Origin: Nageia nagi
Taxonomy: Eukaryota > Plantae > Pinophyta
Direction: 5' to 3'
Length of the DNA stretch: 64,000 bases
Assembly: GCA_050084985.1 (NCBI GenBank)
Contig: JBITNC010000002.1
Coordinates: 19,840,001 to 19,904,000 of the forward strand
The number at the start of each line of letters is the position of its first letter. The first letter of the stretch is position 1. Both the position numbers and the translations under genes were made by a program. Of the stretch, positions 2,538-44,075 are shown in pieces. Below the pieces are notes generated by a model. The model ran no database searches and was not told where the DNA came from. It saw only the letters and a list, made by a program, of their open reading frames with translations.

Positions 2538-5500
2538 CTAATGCTTGGGAAGTGTGACCACTCCTAATTTTTATCTCAAGTATTCAAAGAATTTCTTGGG
2601 AAATGGTTTGGTGAAAATATCAACTATTTGTTTTGTTTTGGGAACAAACTCCAACTTGACTTCACCTTCTAGTACTTTCTCTTTTTAAAAATGATACTTG
2701 ATGGTTATATGTTTTATTCTTGAATGCATGATAGGGTTCTTGGAGATGTTTATGGAACTAATATTATCACACATGATACAAATGGGCTCACTAACATTGA
2801 TTCCTAAATCCTTAAAAGTGTGTTTAATCAACTTCAACTTCACCTGTAGATAATGAAATTTATTCTTGTTTCTTATTTTACCATGAAACAATATTATCAC
2901 CAAGAAAAAATGCACCTCCACTTGTACTCTTTCTATCATCTACACATCCTACAAAATTTGCATCCAAATAAGCAATGAGAGTGAAACTTCTACCTTTGGG
3001 ATACAACAATCCATAATCCATGGTGCCTCTAAAATATCTAAAAATATATTTTACTATAGTAACATGTGTTTCCTTGTGGGCTACTTGAAATATTGAAACC
3101 ATGCATATTACTTGTAATATATTTGGCCTAGATGCAGATGATATAGTAAACCACCAATCATTTATCTATAAATATTTTGATCAACAAGAGGTGAATTATC
3201 CTCTTTACTCAATTTGTAGCTACTCATCATGGGAGTGTTCATAGGTTTACTATCCTCCATGTTAAACTTTTTCAACATCTCTTTCATATACTTAGTTTGA
3301 GATATGAATATTCCTTTGTCTAATTGATTCACTTACAAGCTAACAAATTATGAAAATTCACCCACCATAGACATGTCAAATTTATTTTTCATTTGATCAA
3401 AAAATCCTTGCATATTTCATTTTGGATCCATCAAATATGATATCATCTACATAGACAATAATGATAATTTGATAATCATTTTTAATTATAAGATACAAAT
3501 TACTATCCACCATACCTTTCTTAAACTATTTTTATATAATATAATTGTCTAGACTTGCATACCATGCCATTGGTGCTTTTTTCAAAATATATAAAGATTT
3601 CTTGAGTGTATAATCCATATTTGGATCTTCTCCTAACTGAAAGACATCTGGTTACTTAGTATATACTTCCTCCTCTAACTTTTCATTGAGAAATATTGAC
3701 TTAATATCTATTTGATATAATTTAAAGTTCTTACAAATAGCTAGAGCAAGAAAGATTCTAGTAGCTTTTAATCTAGCTACAAATACAAAGGTACATATCC
3801 TTTGCATGCTAAAATTGCCTTGTTCCTCATGAACTTGCCATCTTCATTTAGTTTGTTTCTAAAGATCCACTTAGTGGCTATGATATTCTTACTGGTTGGC
3901 CTTAGAATTAACTCCTAAGTTTTATTCTTTTTAATTTAGCTAAGCTCCTCTTCTATAGCCTTGACCCAATGCTCATCCTTGCTAGCTTCTATTACATCAT
4001 GTAGGAGTTTTTGGAGTGGTTGGTTGGTGTTATTTTTCTTCCTTTGGCTCTTCATTATTACCTTTAATGAGGTCATCATAAGTGGGGTACTATTTTTTAT
4101 TTCCAACAAATTATTTAGGCCCTTATCTACCTTGACATCAACACTTTAAACAATTTTCCTTAGCCTTTGATTGTAACATTGATAAGCTTTGCTTTCAAAA
4201 GAGTAGCCAAGAAATATACTTCCATCTATTTTATCTTAAAATTTTCCAAGATTATCTTATATTCTCTTGATGTAATACTTGTTACCAAATATCGTGAAGT
4301 GTCTTACTATGGATTTTCTACCAAACCATAACTCATATGGTGTCTTATTTTCATATGATCTTATCAAACAACTATTATGAATATAGATAGCAATATGAAT
4401 GGATTCTTTCCCAAAATGATCATCCACTTTACTCTTAGTAAGTATAGTTCTAGCCATCTCTTAAAAAAATCTATTCTTTGTCTCCATAACATTAATTTAT
4501 TTAGGTGTTCTGGCTGATAAAACTTTCCTTCTAATAATATAATTCTTATAGTATTAAGCAAACTCCTTTGAAATAAAATCTCCTCCTCTATCTAACCTTA
4601 AGCATTTGATCATTCTACCAATTTGATTTTTATATAAGGTTTTGAAATACTTGAACATGTAAATAGCCTTTAATTTGTGCTCTTGAGGGATTCACTTAAT
4701 AGAAAATCTTCAAAATATGTGCAAAAATGAGCTTCTTAAAAAAAACTCCTATTTTTAAAATTTATCATCTCCCCTTTTTATTAAACCCTTCCTGATAAAC
4801 CCTTGTATAATAAATAATAACCCTTTTTTAAAACTCACCTTTTTGAAAAAAAATTAAATAAATATTTAATACCTCCACCCTTAACTATGTACCCCCTACC
4901 CACCCTAACGACACCACCTCCCTTTTATACTAGTATAATATTTTGCATGAATTTTAAATACCCATACCCCCCTCTCCTTATAAAATACTTATTAATGTAC
5001 TGATGGATCAACTAGATATTAAAAAAAAATTGTATTTTCACACATGGTATTTACCATTTCCTATTAGTGACTCCCCTAGGCATGTGGTTAAGAAATTGTA
5101 CCCATGTAATTCTATTATAGTCATCAACACATAAAATATATATATATATGGTCATGTATACTTTAAGTTCTTGTTGGCCCACATAAATCAGTATGCATAA
5201 GTTCTAATGGTTTGCTAGTATAATACTTCTTAGCTTTGAAAGAGGTTTTTATTTGATTACCTTTTTGGAATGAAGAATATATATGAATTGATGGCTTGGA
5301 TATGCTAGGAATGTCATGAATTTCCTTTTTTAAATTTATCTTTGCTAAGTTATCAAAAATAATGTGCCATAGCTAACTTGCATCTTCTTTCCCAAGAAAA
5401 TAAGATCCTTCTATTATTTCAGTCAACGTATATATATTTTTAGTTGTTCTAATTCCAATAGGTATTAGTTTGCCACTATTTTCCCTTCTAATCTCACAAC

Positions 5501-7841: not shown

Positions 7842-9808
7842 TATTATACTAAAAGTGACACTAAGAGGGGGGTGAATTAGTGTGTTTTAAAACTTCTTTA
7901 ATATTAGCCAAGAAATGAAAATTAACAGCTAGTTATTTAAAGATAAAAAGCACTCACACAAGCAATTAACACATACAATAAGATTTATAGTGGAAGACCA
8001 ATATGGGAAAAACCACTTTCCCAAATGGATTTCTTGTGCTCCTACTCAAATCTAGTCTGAAATGGTTTGTTCTTACAAGATTAGAAGCACCAACTTCTAA
8101 GAGCACTAACTCCTAAGTTTTACAACACCCATTACAAGGAGCACCAACCCCTCTTGTCAAGTACCAAATTGACAAAATAATAATTTAGCAATTTTGATGA
8201 AAGATTGTCAAACCTATCTCAAATATCCTTAATGATAAAGCTCATAAAACTTTACTCTTGGTTGGCTCTATCTAATTTTTGCAATTAATCCTCATAATCA
8301 ATCTATTGGCCTCCTTATCATTTGAAACAATTCAACACTTTCAGTCTCTTTTCTATCTTAGCAAAATATTATCGACCATATTGCTCATCAATAATGTATA
8401 TCATCTTAGTTCCATAAATACAATCTTCTCAATAATGTATATCATCTTAGTTCCATAAATACAATCTTCTTACTTGGCATACACCTCTACCATCATACTC
8501 CTTATAGCAACACTCACACTACATGGCTTCACCAATAACAACAAGTACTAACAATCTCATTCCAATGTTTACTTGGCTATGATCAACCAATTATTATCAA
8601 TTATTATCCATTATAACTATTATAAACCATTTTTTCAATTATTTTCCTGAATTAGTCACCACCCATTAGCTATATTTCCTAGGTTACACATTATTTCATC
8701 TATTATTTCATCCATAAACTACTTGTGATCAATAAATTTGCTCATGGTGGTCATTTAGTTATAACCTATTTACCTTTGGTTACAAAAATGATAAAATCCT
8801 GAAAGTACCATATATTTAAGCTTTTATAACTTTTGATATAGATGTCCAAATGTAATAAAAACTCCATCATTGGATAGTTTATATCTAGGAGATGCAAAAG
8901 AAGTAGTCATACAATCCCTTTTGGTTCAAAAATGAACATTTGAAAATTATTTTTGTAACTACTATAGAATATGGCAATCACAAATGCCCAAAACTTCCAA
9001 TACATAAATACCCAACATTTATTGTTCATAAATGCCCAACACTTATTGTGTGCATTTTTTACCCTCGATAAACTTTGTTGATGCCTAACAAACTTCATTG
9101 ATGCCTAACAAAGTGTGTATAAACATCCAATCCAAAATTTAATAGCTACATTTTTTACCTCTAAAAAGCATTATTTTGACCCCTAACTAACTATTTTGAT
9201 TCCTAACTAACAATTATGATGCCTAAATAACTATTTTCTTGACCAACTAAGTGTCTTTGATATGTTTGATCAACTAGCTCCATTTAGTGGATAATTTTTC
9301 AACAAAGGTAAACACGCATATTCTCATTGGAAAGCTTATTTTGAGCACTATCTTATAATAATAAAGCAAAATAATTTGAATCATGTATTAAGATTTATAG
9401 CTCTACAAATATGATCGATCCTTTTATGATAAATTCTAACCATCACAACTCCACTTTGCATTGTCATACATTACCTTGCATTATCGAACTTCACCTTTCA
9501 TTGTTAGAATTCATTGGTTATTATCAAACTCCACCTTTCATTATCAGCCTTCACTTTGCATTTAAAAACTTCCTTATTCATCCTTCACTTTGCATTATCA
9601 AAATTCATATTTGATTTTCCCTTTTAACTTCTTTTTCTTCACCTTACAGTATCACACTTTGCTAGCTATTATTGGCCTTCACCTTGCATTATCAAAATTC
9701 ATATATAGTCTATCATTTTAACTCCTTTGTTATGGTGTGTTGATAAAAATTATATTTTCTCTTCCATGGTGTATTAATAATAATAACTAACTCTAACTTT
9801 ACAAAACA
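7842..9808 (-). repeat. 5' LTR of copia element (~1.97 kb)
   Basis: Homologous to 1-2161. C-rich ATTCACCCCCCTCT signal near the PBS end; internal ~41 bp tandem duplication at ~8389-8469. Confidence 0.87.
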
Positions 9809-14699: not shown

Positions 14700-15758
14700 A
14701 TTATTTTTCTAAAGAAAATCAAATTAAGTTAGAAAACCTTAATCAAATTATGGAAGATGAAAACTTTAGTTTTCATATTAATCAACCATCATATCATGGA
14801 ATATAGAATAAGTATCAAAATAAAATCTCAATCAACCATCATATCAAATTCAAATTCAATGGTGTATTAATCAAATGGATCATGAATAAAATCAGCCTTA
14901 TATTTTGCAAAGCAATTTTATCCCAAATCAAGCATTGAATCAACTATTATGGAAAAGCTTTCAAAAATACTTTCAACCAAGTTACCAAAATAAAATCATG
15001 GAAAATCAACAACCTCTAACTATGAATGATGAAATTATAAACAGGTTATAAGATATGAAGCTTAAAATCAATAATCAAGGATAAACCAAGATGTCTTATC
15101 ATATGATTGTCAATGAACCAATCAATCCCATGATTCCAATCAAGTCATTTCCTTACAATTTTATAGTTCCTTATATTGAAAACTTTAAATGTAAGGAGGA
15201 TGTAAGGGAACATTTTAAAAAATTCAAGTATTCTTGCTACATCATATTTAATAATGATGTTTTGATGCTTTGAACCTTTCCAATGACTCTTACTCTTACA
15301 GACCAAGCATTGGATTAGTACATCAATTTTTCTAAACATAACATTTATTCATTTGAATAATTGGAAAACTTATTATTAGATCAGTTTTCTATTAAATATA
15401 AGAAATAGGCAATCTATTACAGATTTGAATAAACTATCATAATTTGATGATGAATCTATCAATGACTATGTATCATGTTCAAGAATATTAATAACAAATT
15501 TGGTTTACACTTTACCACTAGATGACCTTGTGAGGATGTTTAACAAAAGTTTTAAAAATCCTATATCATTTATTTTAGAAATATAACAACATAATTCATT
15601 TGAATAGGAGTTGGTACAAGCTAAAATCCTTAAGTAAGTTAAGCTCCATTCAAGTGAAATCAAACTATAAAAGAAAAATAATGATCAAAAGCATAACAAT
15701 GGTGGAAATGAAAATAATCAATCTTATCAAAATATATAATCAAATCAAGTATCATATT
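14700..15758 (+). pseudogene. Ty3/gypsy gag remnant (5' part, split by the Sola2-like element)
   Basis: PYIENFKCKEDVREHFKKF...ML*TFPMTLTLTDQALD*Y...IYSFE*LENLLLDQF, a retrotransposon gag pattern. Gln/Asn-rich sequence resumes after 26594. Confidence 0.7.
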
Positions 15759-15828
15759 TGGTAAGTGTCCAAAGTTGAGTCCCACTTTGGAGGAATTAAT
15801 TGTAACTTAATTTTTTTATCATGGGCTT

Positions 15829-15960
15829 GAGATCCTAGGTACAACCCCAAGATCCCAATTAGGCTCACGATTCTAAGCCTAGCTAGGATCTCAAGGGTCA
15901 AGATCCCAAGGTTTGAGATCCTAAGGATCATGATCCTGACACCTAGGATCCTAGGGTCTA
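15829..15960. repeat. GATC-rich subterminal repeats (GATCCTAG/GATCCCA/GATCTC)
   Basis: Clustered GATC motifs near the left end. A similar cluster lies at 25692-25762 and in the MITE at ~39650-39700. Confidence 0.65.
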
Positions 15961-16189
15961 AATATAAATAGTTATAAATTCCCTCACAATTTGATTACAA
16001 TCATTTTTAGCTATGAATGTTGCATGTTGGTGATGCCTAAGATTTCAGGATTCGCAATCCTGATCTTAGAAGTTCTAGTTTTCCCTCTAGCTTATCCCTG
16101 TAGTGACCTCCATCATTCCCCCTTCAAGGTATGCCTTGGAATATCTCTTCTAGTTTATTTTTTGAAAAAAAAATATTTTTTTTATTTAT

Positions 16190-17060
16190 ATTAAGGGTTT
16201 GGGTAAAAATAAAAAGGGTTTTTCTATCTAATTTAAGGGTTTTTTGGGCCAAAATGAATGTTTTCATGTAAATTAGGGGTTTTAGGGGTTTACTATTCAT
16301 AAATAATGATTATTATTGGGTTTACTAAGTTTATATTAAATTTAAAAATAATAAAGTATGTTTTATGTTATTAATTTCTAAAAAAATAGATATTATATTA
16401 GATATAAAGCTTTGATTATACATGTTTTAGATTAAATTGATTATTTATATTTTAGATTAAATTGATTATTTATATTTTAGATTAAATTAATATTGATTGT
16501 ACATGCGTTAGATTGTATATTTTATATTAAATCTTAAACCCTAAAAATCTTACTCAAAACCCTAAACCCTTAAAGTCATAAACCCTAAACCTTGAAAATT
16601 TTACTCAAACCTCTAAACCCTTAAAACACTAAATCTTAAATTTGTAAAATCATAAACCTTGAAAATCTTATTCAAAACCCTAAACCCTTAAACTCATACA
16701 CCCTGAACCCTAAAAAATCTTACTCACAATCCTAAACCTTAAATTTATAAAATCATAAGGCTTAAAAATCTTACTCAAAACCCTAAACCCTTAAACTCAT
16801 AAATGCTAAACCTCAAAAATCTTCCTCAAAACCTTAAACCCTTAAAACCATAAATTGTAAAATCATAAACCCTAAAAATATTACTCAAAACCCTAAACCC
16901 TTAAACTCATAAATAATAATTTTTTCACATATTTTGGTAATCAAGGTAAAAATCCTATAATATTGAGCTTAGAGGACCCATTAAAACCCTAAATATTAGA
17001 CCTATAAACCTTGAATCCTAAAAATCTTACTCAAAACCCTAAACCCTTAAAATTTAAAAC
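16190..17060. repeat. Telomere-like (TTTAGGG/CCCTAAA, telobox) arrays plus a 25-bp minisatellite
   Basis: G-strand variants at 16190-16325. TTGATTATTTATATTTTAGATTAAA tandem at 16412-16490. Repeated AAAATCTTACTCAAAACCCTAAACCCTTAAA units at 16530-17060. Confidence 0.85.
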
Positions 17061-18142
17061 CCATATATCATAGGAAAATAATCCCCTATATAATCCATTT
17101 TCAATCCATCCTTTAAGATTATTCTACCTTGATTTGCATACATAATTCTATAAAATCCCCTAATATTGAGCTTAGAGTCCTTCACAACTTACATTATGAT
17201 ACTCCTTATCACACCCCTCTTAAAATTGATCTTCTTACTTTCAATTGATCTTCTATATTAATCTTTTTTAATCACTTCATACTATGATTTGACTTACACA
17301 TCTAACAAATATATCCTAATGTAGCTTTTACTTACATGGTTCTTTAGGATGAGGGGCCTTCTCCAAATATAGTTAAGATATTAGGAGTTTTATGGTTATT
17401 TAGGGGCCTTTTCTTATGCAAATGGGGGCTTATTTTTATCCTCTTACTTCTTTTGTAGAAAATGAAAATCAAGGTTATCCTCTAGATAGCTTATGGACCT
17501 CTTCATGAAAAAATTATAAATTCATTAGGATCCCATAGTATTTAGGGAAACTCAAATTCATCACTTAGGAACATCATGTTCTTATAAATATGTTCTAATA
17601 CTTATAAATTATAAGATAACTCAAATTCATCACTTAGGGGTTTATTTCTCTTGCATTTTCTCACCTATCCTTCTCATCTTAGTGTTAAGGATAGATCTCC
17701 CACCATATAATAACATGATTAAGCATTTCATATTTATCATTTCTAATAACATTGATTTTGAAAGAGAAACAATGTAAGGCAATACCAAACATGAATTTAC
17801 ATAAGGGTCTTTATTGTTCTTAAATTATGACCAACCTTAATTTCCATTTTTAACTTCTTAGTTTTTTCATTTGCCAACCTATTACCATTTTTAACTTCCT
17901 TGAAGCATATTTCCTTCCTCTATCAAAACTCACTCATACTCTTAATGATTTACAATCTTTTTAGGTTATTATTTCATGTTGCTTGTTTAAAAGGTTTGAA
18001 CTATTACATGTATGTTTGATGAATATTTTATTATTAACTCAATTTAATGTTTTCTAGATTTGAACTAGATTATTATGACTTATAGATCTTTAAATTTAAT
18101 ATAGTTATATTTATTCTTAGAACTCATTGTTAATTCATGCAG

Positions 18143-19800
18143 GTGAACTTTTGTATATGTCCATGAAAACCCCCATTACTTGAGGATGCTTGCTTGTGAG
18201 AAAATATAGTTGAGAACATCACCTCTATTTAGGGTATAATTTAGGAGATGTTTCATCATAAGGTTATCCCCCCTGCATCTTACATGGTTTGCAATTTTAA
18301 TGCAAATTATAGTTGATACAGTTGCATCCATATATCATACCATAGGTGATTTCCAATCACATAGAGAGGAGAGGAGGAGGTATTATACTGATGGCCTATC
18401 CCATAGACAAATTGATGAGACTTATAGCATTACAAAAGGAGATTTACATCAATATTTTAGCTATCCTAGAAATGGAGAACCAATGGCACCCACCCAAAAG
18501 AGAACTTCTATTTTTTGGTTTAGGCATGAGGGGATCATTACATATATTTAGGAATGATGGTGGATTATATTTAATCATCCACCATATAATGGTGGTAGTG
18601 AAATACCCTTTTATTTAAATAAATTTTTATGGGTGGATTTTTTTATTGGGAAAAAACCCAATTATTTTGATATTCATGAATTTCATGGTGTTGGTATGGG
18701 TAGTTCACATCAAAGGTTGGGGGCATGGCTTGATCCTAGATGATCTTCTCATGCTACACATCTTGTTATTCCTCTTAGATATTTTGTTCCCACACATGTC
18801 CATCATACAACCATGGTTTTTTCCCTTGGATCATTGAGTCATCTTACAACAAACCTCACTGCACAAGCTACTAATGTGGCAGCTAAGTTTGATGAGGTTA
18901 GAGGTGATGGCTTAGGACCTAGTGGAGTTGGTGGGACTAGCATCTTACCTAGGATATTTGCACTTTATATATGTATCATTTTCCATGCGATATTTCATGG
19001 ATCATCCACACCATCATATTCAAGAGGATTTATGCATTTATTATTTGGTGATATTGATCATGAGGCATATAGGCATGGATCTGCATCTTTGGGTGATCAA
19101 GGTTAGCATATTGATTTCCTTGTAAGAAAGATGCATGAGACACCTTTCAACCCATACATGGTATGTATTAAATAATGTTTATAAGTTAGAATTTCAAATG
19201 TAGATCAAATTGTAAAAAATTTAATAATTTGAATATTTATATATATGTACTTATAGGTTGAACACACTTTTACGATGCAGGATATGTTTGTTGATACCAC
19301 TTTTACTAGCGAGGCATATGGGTCACATGTTTATTCTATAGTGGTTGATCCTTCAACCTATTAGAATCCATTGATGGTAATTTATAATGCATTTTTTTAT
19401 TAAGTTTCTGGTAGATGTGGTTATAAATTTATAATGATTAAGTTTAATTTTTTTAATTTTCTTTTGATCTCTTCTAGATCTTGGTTAACACTCTTTTTTC
19501 TCAAGAGGTATATGAATCATCAGAGTGGCCTATTATGATTGAGCCTTTAGTTTCTCATGAGTTGCATGGCTCATCAAAGTGTCCTACAATGGTTGGCCCT
19601 TCAATCTCTTAGCATGATATCATGGTAATTTATAATGCATTTTAAAATTTAGTGTACATACATTTTGTATGATAATTTATCATTATTAAGTTGAATTAAC
19701 TCTAAGTTTATTTATGTTTTCATAGTAGGGGATAGTTCTATGTGATACATAGCATGGAATGAAGAGGATTCTTGACTATCATCCTTCACCTAGTTAGGAC
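18143..19800 (+). pseudogene. Intron-containing cargo gene A of the Sola2-like element, unknown product
   Basis: Near-continuous frame GDFQSHREERRRYY...WWIIFNHPPYNGGSEIPFYLNKFLWVDFFIGKKPNYFDIHEFHGVGMG. GT-AG introns at 19161-19256, 19377-19477 and 19625-19725; acceptor at 18142. Confidence 0.6.
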
Positions 19801-20159
19801 TAGTTTGGTAGATAGATAGATATAGGTGGATGGATTTATAGATGTCCATTTTTATTTTATGAGTACATTTGGACTAGATGGAGTATATATATAATCTTAT
19901 TATTTTGATACTAGTACATGTCACATGTGTGGATTCCTATTTTAGATTATAACTGATATACATATTTATATTTTATCTACATTGATGGATGTTGATGGAT
20001 TGATATACATGAATAGAATTCATAAAGCTAACTTATATTATCATTTAAATAAGGTACCCCACTACCAATCAAGCACATTAAACTATGAAATTAACCTTAA
20101 ATGATCTTGGAAGGGTTATGTTTGAGTGGTGATCAATTTGGAGGATGTTTTGATGTTTA

Positions 20160-20230
20160 GTTTGTGAGGTTTAGGGTTAATATTTAGTTTAAATAGCTAG
20201 GGTTAGGGGTTAGTGTTTAGGGTTATGCTA
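20160..20230 (+). repeat. Short TTTAGGG/TTAGGG-like cluster
   Basis: GGTTTAGGGTT, TAGGGTTAGGGGTTAG and GTTTAGGGTT; followed by a GGGGAA tandem at ~20301-20348. Confidence 0.7.
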
Positions 20231-20362
20231 AGACCATAAAATATTTTTAGCTAAACTCATTTTTTTAACTCTTTATTTTTTTAACTATTAAATTGTTAAA
20301 GGGGAGAAGGGGAAGGGGAAGGGGAGGGGAATAACTTGGGGAAGGGGAATTGATATTATATA

Positions 20363-20802
20363 TGATGAAATCAACCCTTTCTAAATTAACTTCTAGTCTA
20401 CCAAGATCTCAAGAAGATAGTCACAACATCAACACAATAGTATAATAACACAAGCTAATATATTAAAGAACACAAGATATAAAGTGGTTCCTCCCTCCTT
20501 GAGAGTACATCCACTAGCCAAGATCTTCTTATTCTTAAGGACCTCTCTTACAGAATCTCTCCTTTCTCTCCAAACCCTAAACCTATAGCATAGCTTGCTT
20601 CTAAGTTACATTATGAGAGGGGGTACCTCTCCATTTGTAAAATCAAACCCAATATTTAACCTTCCTTTTACTCAAGGTTAAGGTTAAATATTTTTCCATA
20701 TTTATTCCCTTAATGCTTTAAGGTATCTAAAGATACTTTAAGCATTAGGTGAATTTATATTAAAGAGAAATATTACATAATATAACATTACAAATTCTAA
20801 CA
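20363..20802 (-). mobile_element. Solo LTR (copia-like), 440 bp, nested in the Sola2-like element
   Basis: TG...CA termini with a perfect 5-bp TSD ATATA. Contains AACACAAGATATAAAGTGGTTC...GTACATCCAC, typical of a reverse-oriented copia U5. Confidence 0.85.
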
Positions 20803-21029
20803 ATATATTAGATGTATTTCCTCACATAACAAATAACTAATTATCCCACATATCATAAATCAATATATATATACATAATTCAAATATAAATATCAACAAA
20901 ATATATCCTTAAAATAAATATCATCATACAATATATATAGGTCATAAATATATCATATTCATGATTCTAGGTACAAATCCAAAATGATAGGTGTGCCAAG
21001 ATACATTGTGTAATGATTCAAAATAATGA

Positions 21030-21792
21030 TGTACTTTTGTGAGTCCTCTTCTTACAAATGTTAATTAAATTTGCATGGGAATGTGAGTGAAATATATATA
21101 ACATAATTGGGGTTGATAAATGCATCACATGAGGATTAACATAGGCATGCTAAGTAAGGTGGTTGGTGCATGTGATATCAAGTCCTATGCTAACTCTGTA
21201 ACAATGAAACATATCAAGATATGAACAATCATTAATGAAAGGGACCCATGGATGATGGGGATTATCCTCCACTCAAAATTTAATTTTTTAACTACCTAAC
21301 TCTCAAGGTCATGTAGTTGTATTTTCCAAATGATGAGCACCATGACAAGGTAGAAATGCACTGAGCCTAAAATTAGGGAATCATGTTCAATGGGGGAATC
21401 ATAAGCTTTGTTAAGGATCTTTATGGATATAACCCAAAGTGATCTAGGTAGCTATAGACTCTTGATATAAAGGTCAGGTTTAGGTTGATGTAAATCACTT
21501 CTATATCACTATAAAATTGATCTTATAGGCTATGGGGATGGCCAATGTTGGGGTCAAGCATTGTAGGAACATTTGTTCTACCATTAAAGAGGTCCAAACC
21601 TTCCTCTATCCTAGTGATCCTATTACCAAGAGAAGGGTATCTACCTATATAGTGTTTGATATTCCATACCCATCAAATGAAGTCTCCAAGGCATTGGTTA
21701 GACTCTTCACTCTAGAAGGAAGACACACATTACTGGCTTTCATTTTCTCTTATTGGCCCACTTCAAAGAAAATCTATAGGTAAATCTTCCAT
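21030..21792 (-). pseudogene. Possible decayed cargo ORF B, unknown product
   Basis: MEDLPIDFL*SGPIRENESQ...WVWNIKHYIGRYPSLGNRITRIEEGLDLFNGRTNVPTMLDPNIGHPHSL...; stops are mostly explicable by C>T or G>A. Confidence 0.4.
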
Positions 21793-21920
21793 GTTTCTTA
21801 TATCATTCAATAAATTCCTATATTTTTAGGAATAGGGGATAATTGCCCCTCCATCGAGGATTAATTAAAAATTTGATCATCTATGCTACGAGGGTAGCAT
21901 ATCGAATCATTCCATTAAAA

Positions 21921-22817
21921 ATGGCTCCTCCATAATTAAATGCAATTGATTCATTGCCTAATCAATTGAATTTTTCATCCCCACCTCTGGCTCTAGAGAA
22001 TGTCAAATTTAAAAGCCCATCCCCCTTAAAGATGGTTGTAGAACCAACAGAAGAGTCCTAGCCAATACCAATTAAGATCTTTGATGACTTGAAATCCTCA
22101 AAGTTAGTGGATTTTGAATATGAGGCCTTGAATATTATAGAGGATAATTTTTCCAAGGACATTCTGAAGGAGAATTCAACCTCAAATTCTATGGATATTG
22201 ATTATGAGTCTTCAAAGATGATGGAGGATATTTCATCAAAGGAGAGAATAGGGGAGCATTTTGCCTTAGAGTCTATGGATGAGGTTTTTCCTTTAGATAT
22301 TATAGAGGAAACCTTTTCTACTTTGGAATAACACCCATATATAGAGATTGTATAGGATCCTATACCTATGATGGAGGAGACACTACCCACAATGCCTGAA
22401 GAGGCACCTCAACCTATAGTAGATGATGCCCTAGAATTGAAAATTCTAGTAGCTATAAATGAAAAGGATCTAGGGCCACCTCAGCTGGTGAGAAGTAGCT
22501 TTGACTAGAAAATGCCTTTCAAATTCATCTTAAACATCATTGATTGTAGAAATTTATAAGAATGGGATAGTATCATGACATTCAAGATGGCAATACAAAA
22601 ACATTGGGATGATAATTTTGAGATCAAAAGAAAAAAATTTGAAGCCTTCATAGCCATTCAATGTGAAGAAATTCCTAAAGCTATCCTAATTCACATTGAT
22701 AAGGGCTTCACAAAAATAGAGCTAGCAATCTTTTGGTTAGCTTTTGAAGTACACAAGAAATCCCTAGGGATCCTCAAGATCAGACCTTGAATGAACATGC
22801 TCTTTTATAGGTGTTAG
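21921..22817 (+). pseudogene. Decayed cargo ORF C (~300 codons, acidic linker plus helical C-terminal domain)
   Basis: The ATG at 21921 and ORFs 22089-22331 and 22575-22790 are all in one frame with no frameshift, only isolated stops. Confidence 0.6.
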
Positions 22818-23069
22818 ATCCTATGAAGGAGGAAGAAGATTGATATCACATGAGAAGCCTTTATGTTTGACCCTTTTTGTTCAAAAATTGTATTGAATAT
22901 CCACATGTTGAATATCTAAATGTAAGATAGGTTTTGTAAGCCTTGTATAAATAATCCCCTTTAATAAACTTATCCTTACCAAAATATATATATATATATA
23001 ACATAATTGTATTTAATTTAGAAAATTCATATAATTCCTTGTTTAATATTACCTTTATTTTTCAATACA

Positions 23070-25520
23070 TTATACAATCTACATCCTCTCTTTTTTACAA
23101 TGAATCTATAATCATCTCATGGTCATCCAATGAAAGGGTGCACAACACTCTATTAGCAGGCTTCCTTTTATATTTGAATAGTTTGATATTTCTTACCAAT
23201 ATAAAATGCAAGTAATGTAAAATCTTCTTAGTTATTTCATAATATTTGAATGCAGGTAAAACTAGTTACTAGCCTAGTAGGATATTTTCATAGCCATATG
23301 CCAATAACCACCATAGAACTTGTTGGATATAACCATGATTTATCCATCATTATCAAAATTTGAAAGATAATTATAATTAGTATAAAGAAATGTCTAGAGA
23401 GTAAATAATAAGCTAGCTTGAGAAATACATATATACGAACCTATTGGATAAAGAAATCCATCATCGTCACATCGAGGTTGAGTTAATTTATATTTTTTCT
23501 CAACATATCGAGCTACCCAATACCCTCTTCATTCCCTTTAGGTACAACAACTGCATACACATTTCATATAAACAAAATTTATATCAATAAAATGTTAAAT
23601 GTATAAAACTAACATAATATATATTAAAATGTACATTTTTAAGAATATAAATAAATTGAATTTAAATTACCTTCTTGTACAAGGTATGAAATATGATCAT
23701 ATTCTTCTGATACTAATAGTTCATCTTCAATTATTATTTCTTGTTGATCATCATAGGCTTGTGAAGGTGTCAAAGATCTTTGTTTCCATTCCTCATCCCA
23801 TTCTATATTTCCACATGATTATGAATCACCTATAATATAAGTCTCATAAAAATATGCAAGCTCCCTTATCCATATAGTCCAAGTGCTTGCTTTTGAACTC
23901 CTAAATAAAAGCCACTTTGTTGATCCATTGATTGTATCATAATCAAGATGATTCAAAATATTATCTTCTTCAACTAACCAAAAGTATTGTTGAATTGTAT
24001 AATTCTCACTTGATCTTGTAGATAATGTTGCACTACACCATTCCACAATCTCATAAGTATATGTAAATTTACTTACATGACCAACTTTCAGTTGCTCTCT
24101 AGGGAGAGCTCTTTTAACACATGCACTTGTTGCATCATGTTCTCCTTTACAATGTGTTATTCAATAAAACTCATATATGTTCAATATTTTTTTCTTTTTG
24201 AACCCTACTTAGCTAATAAAACATTTGTGAATTTTTTAACTATGTAATATAATTATCTAACCATATGAAATATTTTTCCATATGAATTCCTCTTTCATTC
24301 AAATTATTGTAAAATACCTTAAAACAATGTTGGAAAAACTCTAATGAGTATAATTGATTATCACTCATATAGAAATGGTACACCCTCAAAACTTTTCTTT
24401 TATTTAGTACTATCATCTACATGTCTATATACAATATGGATGAAAATGGCAACTTGAACTAAATTATAATATTGTGATTGAATTTTTTTTTATGGTTTAA
24501 GACTATAATTTTTGGCAAAGTTAACAATTGATAATATAGTTCCAACTAGAAATGTGTTTCTACATTGATGGAATTGACTATTAATCCATCTAGCATTTTG
24601 GGAGTGTTTCACATATTTTGGTAGATACTTATCTTAAAATCAATCATGAATGTATGTACTTTGATGCTTTCAGTGATCAAATTAACACTCTTTCCAATTT
24701 TTCCATATTTGAAATCATACACAACATCCTTGAATATTCTACCATCCACATCTTGTTATACTCTGAATTTATGCATACTAATTTCATGCATACAATCTCC
24801 TAGTAATGAAATGTTTTGACATCTATCACATTATCCTGTAACACATGCATTTGAATAAAATGATTGGGCATGAGAAGGTGGACAAAGCAAACTTGCTATA
24901 AACTCCTTGATGGTTTTAGGTGGTATATGAATACCACATTCTTGCCTCAAATCATTAGTATTCAATTTCCCACATATGTTTCAAGAACCACCATAATAAT
25001 ATTGAAATCACATATGAGTTTTGTAATAACATGTTACTCTTTCCTTGTTAATTTTGGCATACCAAGATTTGCACTTCTCAAATAATCTTTGACTTATTTC
25101 AATATTAAATGGTTGTATTACTCCCTCTTCTCCAAATTGTTGATACAAATCAATTTGAGTAATATCTACTAGGTGTTTTGGATGAGATTCACAATCTTTT
25201 AACCCAAGTTTTAATTTCAAAACATCTCTACAATGTGGTGATACTCTTGTTCTATTATGCCAAAATATTTCAATTATATCCTTGATATCGCTAGTCAATT
25301 TTATGTCATACCTTGGGATTCTACCACTATAACTCCAATATTGGTTGATTGAATCACTTTTAATACTTTATCTTCTCTTTACATCCATTTGCACAATTTT
25401 AATTTCCTCAAACATGTTCTTCTCTCTCTTTTTCATTATGCATCCCTCTCTTTATATGTTTGTTCTTGTTCAAGTGTAAAGTACCTCTAATCTTTCCTTG
25501 ATGTTTTTTTGATCCCATGA
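23070..25520 (-). pseudogene. Sola2-like DDD transposase with 3' introns
   Basis: FWHNRTRVSPHCRDV; CVTG*CDRC; TILSIVNFAKNY (24505-24522, decayed DFAENY); QSQYYNLVQVAIFIH; HFYMSD; IWLDNY (~24255); HCKGEHDATSACVKRAL (24105-24154); WTIWIRELAY. GT..AG intron at ~23670-23555. Confidence 0.82.
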
Positions 25521-26593
25521 CCTCCTTTCAAAATTAACCTTGCTTTGAAATTATTGTAATCACAAAAAATAAACAAAAAGTTGCAAAAAGAAGAGAAAAT
25601 TACAAAATTAATTTGAATAATTTCGTATAATATTGATGGACATGAATAAAAAAATAAAATACTTTTATGCATATTTTAATATATATGGGTTAGGATCCTA
25701 GGGATCAGCAACTCGATGGTTGCGATCTTGTAGCTTGAGATCTTGATCCTTGAGATCTTGATGTTTAAATTCAAATTTTCACCTACCTTTTCCCCTTATT
25801 TCTAGGCTCGTAAATAGGTTCAATGACCCATCCCTTTTCTTTGGACCTACAATCTAACCATCCTAATAATGGTAATGGAATTTGTCAACTTTGGCCATGC
25901 ATTTGATGAGGTTTTTCAAAGAGTTGTTTCATAAAATTTTGAAGGATTGCAGATGAGAGTGCAAATTTCAAATATGCTTTTTTTTTTATAATTAGGTTAG
26001 ATTTATTATGTTTAATATAATTTTTAATGAAATATGATCCATAAAATTTAAAAATTAGTGTTTCATACTTGTTTAATAACTTTTAATTTTATGGGAATTG
26101 TGAAAAAACAATATGTCCACATTCTGCATACAATTCTCTACAACTTAAAAAATGATAGGTTTAGGTCAAATTATGCTTGAGGGACATAAGCACTTTTTGA
26201 AATGATAATCAGAGCTAATAAAAAATTACAAAAAATATCCTCCATAATCTTTATTATCTAAGGATCAATATCCAAAAATATTTAGCAAAATATTGAAATT
26301 TAGGTCCAATTATGTGTGAGGGACATGATGGGAGTATAGTCCTCAAACTTAATTTTTTAAAGAGTGGGTTTTAAAAATTTCTATCATAAATTTACTTATA
26401 TTATAGGTATTGGAATAAATTACATATTTGAAAACTAGACTTCGATTACTACATTTTTATCTAAGTAAACTTTTTCAAGATTTGGACTCTTAAGTGCTTC
26501 AAATTTTGAGATCAATTGTGATGAAATGTGAAAATCAAGGAAACTACTTCCACTTTTTGGTCAAAATTTGGGCTCATCTTCCTATACTTAGCC

Positions 26594-28000
26594 TATTATG
26601 TTAATCAAGCACAACAAATCATATAAATGGTACCTTACTATTAAGACCACTAATTTGGAACATAAGTTTTTTTTGCATAGATAAAAACCACAATACTTTC
26701 ATATAAATTACAAACACTCACATAAGTTGATGCATATAATGACACTCCTTGCCAAGAGATGCCTAAATTGCTCATCCAAATCTTGGAGTGTAATATTTCA
26801 ATGATGTTAAGAAGCCAAATATTATGAAGATGACATTTAGGCTCATGCAACTTGTTCATGTATCCCAAAATAAGTTGTTGAAGTAAAGCTATTAATCCCT
26901 CTATTTGATTAACCACACACTTTAAATCTAAGTATCATTTTCTTTTGTTAGATTATAAAATGACCAATCAATTAAATCAAGTTTCCTATTGGTCCTTGTT
27001 ATCATAGTACATCCATTATATAACACCCATGGATTCTCAACCTCATCAATGATCAAACAAATCTCTTAAATCTAAACAAGATTTGCAAGTTTAGGCCCAC
27101 TGCAAGTTTGAAAGAAGAGAGGTTAATAGTCAACACTAAAAACTCTCCACTTTCTTCACTAAACTCTACAAACTTATATTAGCATTCCTTTAGAGAATTT
27201 CTTGATCTTTCATAGGTTATACCTAAGATAATTTTCATATATTCTCTTTACTAATTGACATCCAATCAAATTCAAGTTTTTAATAAAGGAAGCTCACTTT
27301 ACATAATTATCTTACTAGGTTAAGTATTACAAGTTCATTCCTATATGAAATATCTTAACAAATTGACAAACATATATAATGAAGAATGCTTTTATCTTCA
27401 ATTGTAGTTTAGAGTTTTTTTACTGAACAACCCTCAATAGAATTAAACCCTTCTTATATTCCTTACAAGAGTTAAGTAGAAATATCAAAAAATGTATTAA
27501 ACTAACTTGTGGTTCTAATAATCCATAGCTACACTATGATCTCACCAATAGTTTTTACTATATTTTACATACTATTGATCCCACATTATTTTCTAAATGG
27601 CCATATTTATATTATTACATCTCAACTAAGTGCTAAATAGTTTTCAACATCATATAAATGGTATTTAAGACCTTATATATTTCCCATTTTTATGTTGGAT
27701 TACAAGAATCATTGGATTAACTAATAGGTTATTTTCTTGAATAATTGGACCTTGCCATTAATTACTCTTTAAAAACTATCCAATATTTCTCATTGCTTAG
27801 AATCCCAAAGAATTATCTTTCTAACCATAATAATGAATTTTAAAGTCTCCTATTATTCATACACTTCCCTAGTGTATGCAACAATTAAACCCAATTAAAC
27901 TTCTAGTCTTTTTCAAAACCAAATTAAATTCAATACCTTGATCATAACTCAACCAATGCATTTTAATTACCATCACAACCTATTCTAGATTTCTATCCAA
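26594..28000 (+). mobile_element. Continuation of the decayed Gypsy gag/protease region beyond the Sola2-like insertion
   Basis: Sequence joins 15758 across the TATT TSD. Heavily degraded, so the downstream limit is approximate. Confidence 0.4.
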
Positions 28001-31431: not shown

Positions 31432-34400
31432 TTATCCGCCATATGGTTTTAAATGTACATCATTGATTGAAATGGGAAAATATGATCATCCAATCTAGCC
31501 AGTTCAAAAGAATTGAACCTTTTTACCTTATTGATGATGTAAGGCCTATACCACATAGAATCAAATTTGAAATTCTCTCAAGCTTAGATCTATCCTCATC
31601 CCATTTTTGAACCAAGTCACCCTCCTTAAAATCCTTAGTTGTGAATTTCTTCTTGGAAAACCACTTCTTAACTACATTATTTATTTTTTGAAGCTCTTGG
31701 TAAGATTCATTTCTTACTTCTTCTAAGTGTAACAACTCACACTATCAGACCTACATGGGCTCAAACTCTAAAATATCATATTCTTGCAAAATTTTCAATA
31801 TCAGGAGCTCAATTTGGCTAGACAATATTACCCTTTTCTTATAGATCAAGGTATAAGGGGAATTCTTAATAGATGAATTTATAGTGATGTGGTCCTCCCA
31901 TAGAGCTAGATCTAATTTCTAATCTTAATCTTTATGGTTCTTCTAAAAAGTTCTCTTTAGTATCTAGAGCAAGTTTTTATTAATGGACTTGTACAAACCA
32001 TTACTTTGGATAATATTTTGAGGAGGTATTTAGAAATATCATACTTCATTTCAAATTTTATTACCTTTACTTCGAGGAATGTTAGGCTATTAAATCAAAA
32101 ATGTTTACCATCAATATCCCAAACTTGGCTATTAGCTTTTCTATAAAGGTTATGATTGTCTCTTGCTCTATATTGTTAATTGCAATTGCTTATACCCATA
32201 TAGTGAATTAATTAGTTATATTCAAAATGAATTTGTGTCTTGATGAATAATTTGGATTTATGACTCCAATAAAATATAATCCCCATTACTAAAATATTCC
32301 TCAATCTTGATTAGTTGTAGAGGAAGGGCTTACATCCTTCTTCTCACATAACATTTTTATTTTTTATATTTCTTAGAGATATTAAAAGTATCTTTAAAAA
32401 TGGTTATCCAATAGTTTCCAACTTACATGATCTTAATTGTAGTTGTATAGCCTGAAGAGTGACCCCCAAATGGTCCAAAATGAAATTCCTTAATTATTCA
32501 ATCTAATTCCTTTGGCTTTATGCATCTTAGTAGCATCCATTTATGACTTTCCTATTAGAGAATATCATTTTTCATCATATATCTCAAGGCATGCAACTTT
32601 AATCTCCTTCTTTGTGAAGCATTGATATGCTCTAGGAGTCTTCCATGTTGTAAATATATTGTCAATTGGTATATCCAATATCTTTGACAATAGGGACCAT
32701 CAACATCATTTTGTACTTCTTCTTCAAAGAACATCGATTTTGTAGAGGCATCTATGGCCAATTGTTAATATAATGCCCTACCTTTTATAACCTTATTTGG
32801 TCTTACCTCTACATCATATTAATTAATATTAGTAATCCATCTAGCTTTGCCTTCCCCTCATTTGCCTTGGAGGATGTAATTTCTTACATTTGGGTGTATT
32901 ATCAATCCCAACACTTTACTTTGGAATATGAAATATTTAAGCTTATTGAGTATCTTCATGATAGCATACACTTGCTTCTCAATGAAGCTATACCTATCCT
33001 CATGATTATAGAGAGTATTACTAAAAAAGGTTATTGGATATTCTTCATTGTTATTTCCTTTTTTATTTAGAATAGTTGCTAGACTCTTTTTAGCTCTATA
33101 AGAATACATGATGAGTTATTTACTAAAATCTAGGTTCTTGAGAACTAGTGCTCTAATTATTACCAACTTGATCCTTTCAAAAGCCTATTTTATTTCTAGA
33201 GTACAATGGAAAGGTGTTTCCTTCTTTAGCATCTCCATGATTGACCTTATAATTCCAAAAATATCTTAGATGAACCTTCTTACAAATTTAACTTGACTTA
33301 AGAATGATTACAAAGCTTTCTTATTAGAATGCAAAGTTAACTCAGAAATAACACTCACCCTATATGGATTGATGGACCATCCCTATTTTGATATTATGTA
33401 TCCTATCAACTTCTCTTTCTCAATAGCAAAGATAGATTTTTTAAGATTTAAGGAAATCATAACCTTTTAGCATTTTAGGAACACTTACCAAAGGTGTTGA
33501 AGATGGTATTTTGTTTATCAAGAGAACACTATGATGTCATCCATTAGTATCAAGGGATAGGTATCTTCCAAGTATGCTTTATTTAGGTTTTAAAAATCCA
33601 CACTGTGCCTTATGTTCCCTTTTTTCTTCTTGATTGAGACCAAGTTTCTCAACCAAGTTGAATTCTTGATTGAGTAGATGATTTCGATGTTGAAAAGTTT
33701 CAACACCTCTTTCTTAATAGTAGTCTCAATTAAGGGATTATCTGGTCTTTTCTTTTATTGTACTAGTCTTACATCATTTATAAGCTCTATGGTATGTTGG
33801 ATGGCTTATTTTTCATATACTTTCATATCATTGAATGACTAGGCTATGATCCTAAATATCAACTCTTTACATAATTCTTTAATCCTCCTCATTCCTTTAG
33901 GGTTGTTCTGCATACCTATCTTAAAAATCTTTTTTTGAGCTATTTCAACATCCCAAAAGGCCTTTTCTTCAATTACTAGCCCTCTTTATTGGGTGCTACC
34001 CTCCTTATTGAAGAGTTTTTTAAAAGAAACTATAACCTTCAATAAAGTGTTAATTTGTGATTGTATGATATCTTGATCTTGATAGGATTCCTCTATGGCT
34101 TGGTAATTCCAACATAAGAGTTCTTTGATAAAAATTTGTTGATATATTGATCACCATTAAATACATATCATAAGCATTCATTATCAAGTACTAAGGGTTT
34201 GTATATTACCTATACACCCTTTTGTCTAAAGTGATATTCAGTTGAATTAAATTTTGCATGCTTTTGAGCTAATTCATTTGCCTCTTAGTTCTTAGATCTA
34301 GGAATCACCACACAATTGATGGTATAGTATATCTTAAACAAGTCTCAAACTCTTTTCCTATATGCTCTTAGTTAATAATGTTCATATGAGCACTTATTTA

Positions 34401-38783: not shown

Positions 38784-39779
38784 GGGTGGATGCAAGAAGT
38801 TGGGTCCACTTTAAGGCCAAAAAGTGGAAGTGTTTTCCTTGATTTTCAAATTTGGGTATGATTGATCTCAAAATTTGAAGCACTTAGACATGGAATATTG
38901 ACAAAGGTCACTAGGTTGAAAATGTAGTGCTCAAGGTATAGTTTTCAAATATTTAATTTGTTCTAATACCTAGATCATAGAATTTAAAAATTTTATAGGA
39001 TGAACAAAAACTACTTTTAAAAAAAAAACTATTTTTGGACCATACCATGAACGTGTTCGTCCACCATAATTTGACTAAAATCAAGGTATTTTTAAAATCC
39101 TTTTAAAAAAAGATACCTAACACATTGGAGCTTTTCTTGAATATTTTTCCATAATTTTTGAATCAATATTTTATTTTTTATTAATTTGATACCAAGTATG
39201 TTTGTGGTTTTGAAAAGTTCTCCTATCTGTTGACCATAATTTGATCTAAACTTAATCTTTTTTTAATTTTTTTATTCTTAGAGAGAATTCTGTGAAGCTT
39301 GTCCCTCTATAATTATTTTTTCATAACTCTTTCAAAAATAAAACTTATTAAGAAAATACGAGACCCTCTTATTTCAAGTATATGGACCACTTTTACTAAA
39401 AAAATAATTACAAAATACAAAATCTTATCCAATTGTAAAACAAATTATGTATTTTAAATCTACACTCTTTAATATATAATGGGTTTTAATTTCATAAAAA
39501 AATTCTACCAAAAACTCCATCAAACATATGCCTAAAGTTGAGATTTCCATTAAAATTGCCATAAATATATACTTGCAAGTCCAAGGCTAAGTGTTGGGTC
39601 ACCAAGCCTTTTTCGAGCCTAAATTCAAGGTGAAATTGAAGATATAAATATCAAGATCCTGATATTTGTACATATTTAACCTTTAAATATCAGGATCCCA
39701 ATTTTTTTGACATTGAATTTTAACTTTGCTGATTTTCCCCACTTACCCTTTAAGTGGACCCAACTTCTTGCTTTCACCC
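38784..39779 (+). mobile_element. Non-autonomous Sola2-like element (996 bp)
   Basis: TIRs GGGTGGATGCAAGAAGTTGGGTCCACTTTAAGG and revcomp GGGTGAAAGCAAGAAGTTGGGTCCACTTAAAGG. 4-bp TSD TTTT. Body homologous to the revcomp of ~25760-26593. Confidence 0.9.
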
Positions 39780-42634: not shown

Positions 42635-44075
42635 ATGGGTCGTGCTCCGTGTTGTGATAAAGAGGGTGTGAAGAAGGGGCCATGGACTCCCGAAGAGGAT
42701 CAGAAGCTTATTGATTATATTAAACGCCATGGCCATGGAAGCTGGCGTTCACTTCCCAAACGTGCAGGTTCTGGGTTTTTATTATTCGTGTATTTTTTTC
42801 TAGAGGTTTTGGAAGATTCTGGAATACCATAAGTACTATTGGATTTTATGTTCGATCTCATAGGATAGGAATATTGTGTTTTTTTCTATTTTTGCAGGGT
42901 TGTTGAGGTGTGGGAAGAGCTGCAGGCTGAGATGGACTAATTATCTCAGACCCGATATCAAACGAGGCAACTTCTCAGTCGAAGAAGAGCAGACCATTAT
43001 TGGACTCCATGGAGTTATGGGTAACAAGTAAGACATAGTAGACCATATAAGCTGTTGTGCTAAAAAAAATTATGTTTTTAAACTGTTTGGTTATGCATAC
43101 AGATGGTCTGCAATAGCCTCGCAGCTACCTGGAAGGACAGACAATGAGATAAAGAACTATTGGAACACCCACTTGAAGAAAAGGCTGCTTCAGATGGGAA
43201 TAGACCCCGTGACTCACAGACCCAGAATGGATCTCTTTGATTTTTCCAACCCCATGGCCACTCCATGGAAGAACGCAAGACTGCAGGAAGTTCTGACGAG
43301 AGAATATTATCTAAAAATTGTTGCAGCAGCCATGATCCAGCAGCATACGGATGTCTATAATCATGAGAATGTAGGCTCAATTAATGCCCTTGAGGACCTT
43401 ATACTCAGATCTCAGCCTGCAATTGAATACCCCCTATCTAGCCCAGATTTTACTTCAAATCCTATCATTTCTCAGATTTGTTCTCACCCAGGATCTCTAG
43501 ACTATGATACATTAGTGCCCCAAGCTCTAGAGCAACTGGAATCCCAAAATCAAATCATGAAGAACATTCAGAATTTGTCCCACACTTCCACTCTACATGG
43601 CCTCAATAGTCCATCATCCAACATCAAACTAGAAAGCCAAGACAATAACAATGCAACTCCTACTGCCACCATCATCAATGATCAACAAAATCTAATTCCT
43701 GACCCTAAATTCTTGCCTCATCACTTCTCAATGGAATATGCTTCAACATCATGGCCTGAAGAGAGCCTGTATGGAATTTCTAGGAGTACTGTTTCTCATG
43801 AGTCCTTGCCAGCACTTGCATCGTCCACGTCCTCTTCCAAAATTTTTAACGATTCTTGTGATTTTGTTGGAGATGCTTCTTCATCAATGCTAGACAAAAA
43901 CACTAGCACGCCAAGTGCTACTACTAGTAAGAGATCATATGTATTCCCGTCTGAATTTCTCCTGGATATTCAAGAAGTTGGTTCCCAGCAAACCGAGGAA
44001 AGCCGAGATATGCAGAAGTGTGAATATGGGAGAGACTATTGGAGTGATGTGCTCAATTATGTTTCATTGGAGTGA
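42635..44075 (+). CDS. R2R3-MYB transcription factor, exons 42635-42767, 42898-43027, 43103-44075 (411 aa); GIDPVTH-type clade (subgroups 9/10/11/24 related)
   Basis: [25 protein letters not shown]...[27 protein letters not shown]...[47 protein letters not shown]. Canonical 133 and 130 bp first exons, GT-AG introns, open frame. Confidence 0.97.

Follow-up and report, generated by a model that had tools for sequence, protein, structure and literature searches.

Sola2 elements and the locus under study

The closest described counterparts of the element discussed here belong to the Sola2 group of the Sola superfamily of DNA transposons (Bao et al. 2009, as cited in PMC3627910 and PMC4455052). 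A 4-bp AT-rich target-site duplication (TSD) is a feature of this group, and Sola2 elements of 10–15 kb with a Fanzor gene, named DFa-1/2/3 and PPa-1/4/5, have been described from dictyostelids (PMC3627910). The transposases of Sola2_DFa-2 and Sola2_PPa-1 share the blocks RTDTCPYC/RTDMCPMC, MDFKEN/CDFKEN and FSDVLNHC/LSQVLNHC and, further, FWSDGAKHFKS/FWCDNARHFKS and YHGKSDVD/YHGKSECD (PMC3627910, supplement 3); the published DFa-2 consensus starts with GAGC and ends with GCTC (PMC3627910). Pfam holds no model for Sola1–3 (PMC5751038). Sola is listed among the DNA transposon superfamilies of plants and is said to be missing from angiosperms, as far as these have been analysed (PMC9804982, PMC6839031), and the plant examples that have been named are Physcomitrella Sola1 and Capsicum (PMC9033089). 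The subject of this report is the unit at positions 15759–26593 (10.8 kb) of a 64-kb stretch of DNA from contig JBITNC010000002.1, which was analysed as a whole and is called the window below. This unit is probably one old, dead Sola2-type insertion, whose length is secondary and which has no fixed accessory gene set.

Boundaries of the insertion

The 4 bp on either side of the unit are identical, and its two ends form imperfect terminal inverted repeats (TIRs) that agree at 23/33 positions, which bears out the ~33-bp imperfect TIRs and the TATT duplication proposed in an earlier note on this DNA. The inner sequence begins TGGTAAGTGTCCAAAGTTGAGTCCCACTTT at the left flank and GGCTAAGTATAGGAAGATGAGCCCAAATTTT when read from the opposite end. 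Compared with the TIR family consensus, GGGTAAGTGCAAGAAGTTGGGTCCACTTT, the left TIR is identical at ~25/29 positions with one 1-nt indel, and the other end at ~23/31. When the whole window was scanned with this consensus, the top matches were the two ends of a 996-bp non-autonomous relative (Table 1), and the next were 15759 (+) and 26593 (-). Repeats of 15 bp that contain GATC lie near both ends in inverted orientation: the left set, which is the sole GATC-motif hot spot of the window, has an inverted match to 25676–25757 (82 nt at 72%). These subterminal repeats may be binding sites for the transposase.

The right end can also be placed by comparison with related copies. A whole-library HMMER search with 23822–24160 (-) as the query returned only short metagenome fragments without names and spurious immunoglobulin-repeat proteins; ten fragments were aligned (A2), and a scan of Joint Genome Institute (JGI) metagenome contigs that followed from this alignment gave 80 related loci. 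The right end of the window copy was found again at three of these (L014, L016 and L045), in unrelated flanks. The end of the right arm falls on the same base in L016 and is at most 3 and at most 12 bases off in L014 and L045, respectively. The right-type termini, five in number, line up in register with the small relative's two ends, and divergence of the flanks sets in directly outside the GGG-type end. The consensus is seen at five termini besides the two TIRs of the unit, all in unrelated flanks. GGG is intact in 3/7 of the termini read, the window's own ends having decayed to TGG and GGC. A second terminus was sought in L045, where there was a weak candidate only, with non-matching flanks, and no TIRs were found in the contigs of relatives with intact frames. 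Comparison of the left arm with the 80 loci gave AT-rich noise only.

The transposase and its superfamily

The minus-strand transposase pseudogene is broken by 10 or more in-frame stops and by 3 or more frameshifts, and it was searched as separate stop-to-stop pieces. A profile based on an alignment of 17 intact relatives (A3) matched eight collinear minus-strand pieces from 25367 to 23642, covering profile positions 148–694 with expectation values (E) of 1e-26 to 0.035. In tblastn, residues 323–1025 of the open reading frame (ORF) of one intact relative, L019, fell on 25400–23430 in five segments and three frames, with 10–13 stops; the summed E is 5e-108. The window copy lacks the N-terminal ~147 profile positions, which other low-GC copies have kept; L016 and L010 carry ~575 bp that the window lacks near 25389–25432, and the N-terminal loss is consistent with a ~575-bp deletion relative to these two. 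A C-terminal extension of the transposase, after a probable short intron, was observed at L019:3800–4333 (GDYWLARC...), and it is conserved to window 23430–23645.

The blocks that are invariant in A3 are TCCC.YH, C-x4-C-x2-C, DFAENY, HF.SDD..HC, WSDG.A.QFK and GHGKGEHDGAGA. The motif set that the earlier note had given for Sola2 (DFAENY / WSD / HGKGEHDG) is invariant in the 17 intact relatives, and the decayed motifs that it saw in the window are indeed there, as NFAKNY, FIWLDNY and HCKGEHDA..CVKRAL. A cysteine cluster is likewise present, with the spacing C-x4-C-x2-C and not the C-x3-C-x2-C first given. All three catalytic motifs are mutated in the window, and the change from DFAENY to NFAKNY includes the first catalytic aspartate. 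Having lost its N-terminus, with its stops and frameshifts and with mutated catalytic motifs, this copy can no longer transpose.

Sola2 termini follow a 5'-GRG rule, and the family consensus, GGGTAAGTG..., has the G-starting termini of the group. The TSDs are of the Sola2 type in both the large element (TATT/TATT) and the 996-bp relative (TTTT/TTTT). The published Sola2 blocks are found in the order of A3, and their spacing agrees where it was compared by eye, that is, between DFKEN and WSDG and between WSDG and HGK. The 4-bp TSD, the GGG-type ends and the blocks common to Sola2_DFa-2 and Sola2_PPa-1 thus uphold the Sola2-like identity first proposed for the unit, and the assignment as a Sola2-like DNA transposon is supported by this reading of motifs against two published sequences. 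Pfam gave no match for the window pieces, nor for the intact relatives at E up to 10; this blank is expected, since Sola1–3 have no Pfam model. A word search with a 17-row profile gave ten matches, none of them named.

An AlphaFold model of the relative L022 was built from A3. In this model the catalytic triad would be formed by D616, which sits on strand 1, by D705, with which strand 4 ends, and by D746, at the beginning of the helix that comes next. Residues 594–802 superimpose on the cores of retroviral integrase, IstA and Mos1 over 140–170 residues (VIA Z 8–9, root-mean-square deviation 3.2–3.6 Å), and Foldseek returned weak RNase H-like rows only. The catalytic core of the intact relatives is accordingly predicted by the model to have the integrase/transposase RNase H-like fold.

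Related copies in the metagenome loci and in the window

The low-GC copies (16 loci, 28–33% G+C, 70–86% DNA identity to the window) are all pseudogenes, and the closest of them are L001, L002 and L016. L001 and L002 are 98.8% identical and are therefore counted as one lineage; L016 is 82% identical to both, and the L001/L002 lineage and L016 are each 81–86% identical to the window. The same plant loci recur at 99–100% identity in different JGI samples (L008/L009/L010, a single locus in three samples; L014/L015; L001/L002), which indicates that those samples hold DNA from a single low-GC host plant, a close relative of the window's source. A second set of 17 loci, with 31–43% G+C, has long ORFs, such as L019:1016–4333 with 1106 codons. 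Within the contigs available, these intact relatives have the transposase gene alone, sometimes with one intron, and no second long ORF; ORFs upstream in the intact-frame relatives are N-terminal exons of the transposase.

For the window itself, G+C is 30% and the CpG observed/expected ratio 0.13; the Sola2-like family is abundant in this AT-rich, strongly CpG-depleted, plant-type genome. In the window the family is also represented by the 996-bp element, which resembles a miniature inverted-repeat transposable element (MITE). Its inverted ends are GGGTGGATGCAAGAAGTTGGGTCCACTTTAAGG and GGGTGAAAGCAAGAAGTTGGGTCCACTTAAAGG, and ~850 bp of it are 66% identical to the large unit's right arm. Its TIRs are far better preserved than those of the large copy, and it looks younger. 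At 43962–43985 (+), the sequence CTGGATATTCAAGAAGTTGGTTCC agrees with 17 of the first 24 positions of the TIR consensus and may be another degenerate terminus.

Internal architecture and additional reading frames

In L010, the transposase is followed by the G-rich tract, by a ~770-bp stretch of tandem repeats with a tRNA-Lys(UUU)-like sequence among them, and by a telomere-like array. The G-rich tract and the array of the window have the order and orientation of L010, with 3.2 kb that include ORF A between them, and this matching order places the array at 16528–17060 inside the element. Arrays of the same type are found in the relatives L008–L012 and L016. Telomere-like arrays were seen at L010:2460–4160 and 7887–8096, L012:1–612 and L016:4361–4908, and the side of the transposase on which these CCCTAAA arrays lie varies between subfamilies. 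ARAGORN also reported tRNA-Lys(UUU)-like sequences in tandem repeats directly behind the transposase at L010:7262–7334 and at L006:4003–4075 and 4244–4316; on the element itself, ARAGORN and Rfam found no RNA gene and no tRNA-like sequence.

Does the element hold genes other than the transposase? The earlier note had listed three further ORFs, A to C, on both strands. Relative to an average of 12 stops in 150 codons, stop density is low in three regions only, namely the transposase, 18090–19229 (+) and 21720–22799 (+), and the longest open piece in the unit has 120 codons. Two low-stop stretches therefore stand, and ORF B does not, since no minus-strand stretch between ORF A and ORF C stands out by stop density. 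Pfam gave nothing meaningful for ten ORF pieces of the element of at least 58 residues, including A and C, and no TnpB/OrfB (Fanzor) protein was found when it was sought by Pfam in ORF pieces of this size.

ORF C lies in a nested insertion. The duplication that flanks it (Table 1) reads AAATATATATAACATAATTG, has an expanded AT run in its right copy and is single in relatives, and L001, L002 and L016 pass from window 22992 directly to 21109, an exact empty site. This empty site and the ~20-bp target duplication identify 21110–22980 as nested. No TIRs and no Pfam match were found in it, and a word search of 5.8 billion proteins gave no relative for the ORF C piece. The insertion may be a retroposed copy or repair filler. 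The fixed accessory gene set that had been proposed is thus unsupported for ORF B and fails on ORF C: 21110–22980 is missing, exactly, from L001/L002 and L016, which are the copies nearest to the window, an outcome that the note itself had named as speaking against its proposal.

ORF A looks like former coding sequence without a known domain. A second, overlapping frame is open in the same place, which hints at an effect of composition. One 103-aa fragment is related to it at 62% identity, and the ESM Atlas was blank for it, with low recognition. L001 is collinear with the window from 25381 to 19110, where its contig ends, and ORF A is covered by 0/80 related loci; tblastx of 15759–23100 against all 80 gave nothing beyond L001, L002 and L016. 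The subfamilies of L010, L012, L006 and L045 have different sequence behind the transposase.

Table 1. Features of the Sola2-like unit and of its small relative (window positions)
Feature	Position	Strand	Remarks
TSD, left copy, TATT	15755–15758		read directly; identical to 26594–26597
Left TIR	15759–15791	+	TGGTAAGTGTCCAAAGTTGAGTCCCACTTTGGA; decayed GGG end
Left subterminal 15-bp GATC-containing repeats	15887–15968		GATCCCAAGGATCAA; Tandem Repeats Finder (TRF) row 15887–15936
Tandem array, 51/103-bp units on telomere-like CCCTAAA motifs	16528–17060		TRF and self-blast
ORF A	18090–19229	+	3 stops in 288 codons of one frame
Internal block collinear with L001	19110–21109		77–86% identity apart from indels; blastn
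G-rich (GGGGAA)n tract	20299–20359	+	common to L001/L002 and L010
Window-specific ~450-bp segment beside G-rich tract	20352–20801		absent from L001, L002; partly similar to L010 9623–10004
Nested 1.87-kb insertion with ORF C (22062–22787)	21110–22980	+	direct duplication 21090–21109 / 22981–23009
Sola2-like DDD transposase pseudogene	23098–25400	-	catalytic part without intron
HCKGEHDA..CVKRAL	24131–24154	-	
FIWLDNY	24249–24269	-	WLD vs WSD
NFAKNY	24505–24522	-	vs DFAENY
Cysteine cluster ACVTG*CDRC	24819–24848	-	spacing C-x4-C-x2-C
Right arm	25389–26593		kept in L016 (79%), L014 and L045 (70%), small relative 38796–39635 (66%)
Right TIR	26561–26593	-	reverse complement GGCTAAGTATAGGAAGATGAGCCCAAATTTTGA
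TSD, right copy, TATT	26594–26597		
996-bp non-autonomous (MITE-like) relative	38784–39779	+	33-bp TIRs (29/33); TSD TTTT/TTTT

Genomic setting

The element had been described as splitting a Gypsy gag gene, which was not confirmed: plus-strand frames at 15085–15650 are gag-like by eye, and ten flank pieces reached no gag model in Pfam. The sole retroelement domain nearby is a Ty3/gypsy-type RT_RNaseH remnant at 32861–33115 (-) (PF17917, E 7e-11). No second copy spanning the insertion site was found. The segment 40001–44000, with a CpG observed/expected ratio of 0.53 and 35% G+C, may contain sequence that is younger or genic. Inserted at L010:10802–14776, downstream of the dead Sola2-like copy, is a Copia element whose gag, integrase and reverse transcriptase frames are open (427, 547 and 263 codons), and its open frames suggest that retroelements in that host are much younger than the Sola2-like family.

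Origin of the unit and competing explanations

How did the unit come to have its present structure? Judging by the family, binding of the GGG-type TIRs, and possibly of the subterminal GATC-containing repeats, would fall to a DDD transposase whose core is RNase H-like, and excision followed by reinsertion through a staggered cut would produce the 4-bp duplication, here TATT. The 1.87-kb insertion with ORF C and the ~450-bp segment would have entered after transposition or in the sublineage of the window. The 3.2-kb ORF A block fills the position that a short tRNA-Lys-like array has in other subfamilies, between the G-rich tract and the telomere-like array. Several observations weigh against a single insertion of Sola2 type without accessory genes. 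No related contig spans the left arm (15759–16500), so that the left boundary is drawn solely from the TIR, the TSD and the subterminal repeats. L001, L002 and L016 show structural breakpoints near window 20802–20865, and the left 5 kb could therefore have a different history. The stops in ORF A are far below expectation in two overlapping frames, which together with its 62%-identical relative makes a lineage-specific second gene conceivable. The choice of Sola2 over Sola1 or Sola3 was made from motifs against two published sequences and not from a profile or tree with Repbase references, and the L022 model has a mean predicted local distance difference test score (pLDDT) of 54, with 75–90 for the core alone.

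It is unlikely that the unit is two things, a true element of ~6 kb that extends from the right end to ~20.8 kb and a separate left 5 kb, either a second non-autonomous copy or rearranged DNA. The loss of collinearity near 20802–20865 would fit such a junction, as would the arrangement in L016, where what follows the transposase runs into the 5' arm in inverted copy; the left arm is also without a homologue in the 80 loci, and its TIR, aligned without gaps, stands modestly above background (20/29 against 17–18/29). On the other hand, TATT is identical on both flanks, no better plus-strand TIR match lies inside the unit, the GATC-containing subterminal repeats are inverted at its two ends, and the order of transposase, G-rich tract and telomere-like array is that of L010. 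A different superfamily for the transposase (Sola1, Sola3 or an unnamed DDD group), with a likeness to Sola2 that is only motif-deep, is most improbable. It would agree with the lack of a Pfam match and of any named relative, but two Sola2 transposases from the literature contain five of its motif blocks in the same order and at matching spacing, published Sola2 elements likewise have 4-bp AT-rich TSDs and termini that start with G, and Sola2 is documented to have no Pfam model (PMC5751038).

The earlier note had itself preferred a composite Sola2 lineage whose accessory genes (A +, B -, C +) are fixed and might play the part that helper or anti-silencing genes have in VANDAL/Mutator or CACTA elements. 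This is very unlikely, even though there are two low-stop stretches besides the transposase, L001 shares the region adjoining ORF A in part (down to 19110), ORF A has its one relative, and multi-gene Sola2 elements are known from dictyostelids (PMC3627910). The Fanzor-carrying elements also make the premise of that note, that Sola2 elements have a single gene, too strong. Against this reading, two independent related lineages are without the nested insertion that holds ORF C, no protein relative of ORF C was found by word search, ORF B is undetectable, no ORF piece has a Pfam match, four loci (L010, L012, L006 and L045) carry other sequence behind the transposase, and the intact-frame relatives show one gene. 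A narrower version is decidedly doubtful too, namely that the block at 17060–20299, with its low-stop stretch, is the remnant of a genuine second gene that a gymnosperm-type Sola2 subfamily acquired and propagated. If it were true, this gene would occupy the slot that holds tRNA-Lys-like repeats in sister subfamilies, and the slot behind the transposase would be a cargo site. One old, dead Sola2-type insertion probably accounts for the unit as a whole.

What the window and the 80 loci add is a well-bounded Sola2-like family of a low-GC plant-type genome, with MITE-like derivatives of its own and numerous dead copies, together with intact relatives in other environmental plant DNA. The claim of a gene-carrying Sola2 lineage fails for the window copy. 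The family should be of use when repeats are annotated in large plant genomes, since its transposase would escape standard Pfam-based pipelines.

Comparison with known systems

With the Sola2 group as known from Sola2_DFa-2 and Sola2_PPa-1 of dictyostelid amoebae, the family shares an AT-rich TSD of 4 bp, imperfect TIRs that are short and begin with G, the lack of a Pfam model and, at the level of motifs only, a DDD transposase in which the blocks C-x2-C, DF.EN, FSD..HC, WSDG..FK and HGK...D occur in order. It differs in its plant-type host, in its termini (GGGTAAGTG... against GAGC...) and in the tandem repeats that follow the transposase, which are telomere-like and, in some subfamilies, also tRNA-Lys-like, and the window copy is a pseudogene. 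The Sola2–Fanzor chimeras are likewise large (10–15 kb) Sola2-type elements with a 4-bp TSD and more content than a transposase gene. Their second gene, however, can be recognised as a TnpB-like Fanzor and recurs from copy to copy, whereas no ORF piece of the window element matches any protein family, and its extra sequence is copy-specific.

The likeness to the two-gene transposons of plants, such as PIF/Harbinger (ORF1 and transposase), CACTA (TnpA and TnpD) and VANDAL (VANC), was an analogy drawn in the earlier note from a TIR element with extra frames. The second genes of those systems are conserved in order and needed for transposition or anti-silencing, and ORF C fails on conservation. 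The pair formed by the 996-bp relative and the large element, on the other hand, is of a familiar kind. As in other pairs of MITEs and autonomous elements, the small member has TIRs, a 4-bp TSD and ~850 bp of one arm in common with the large one, and it resembles the expected deletion derivative, with no unusual difference.

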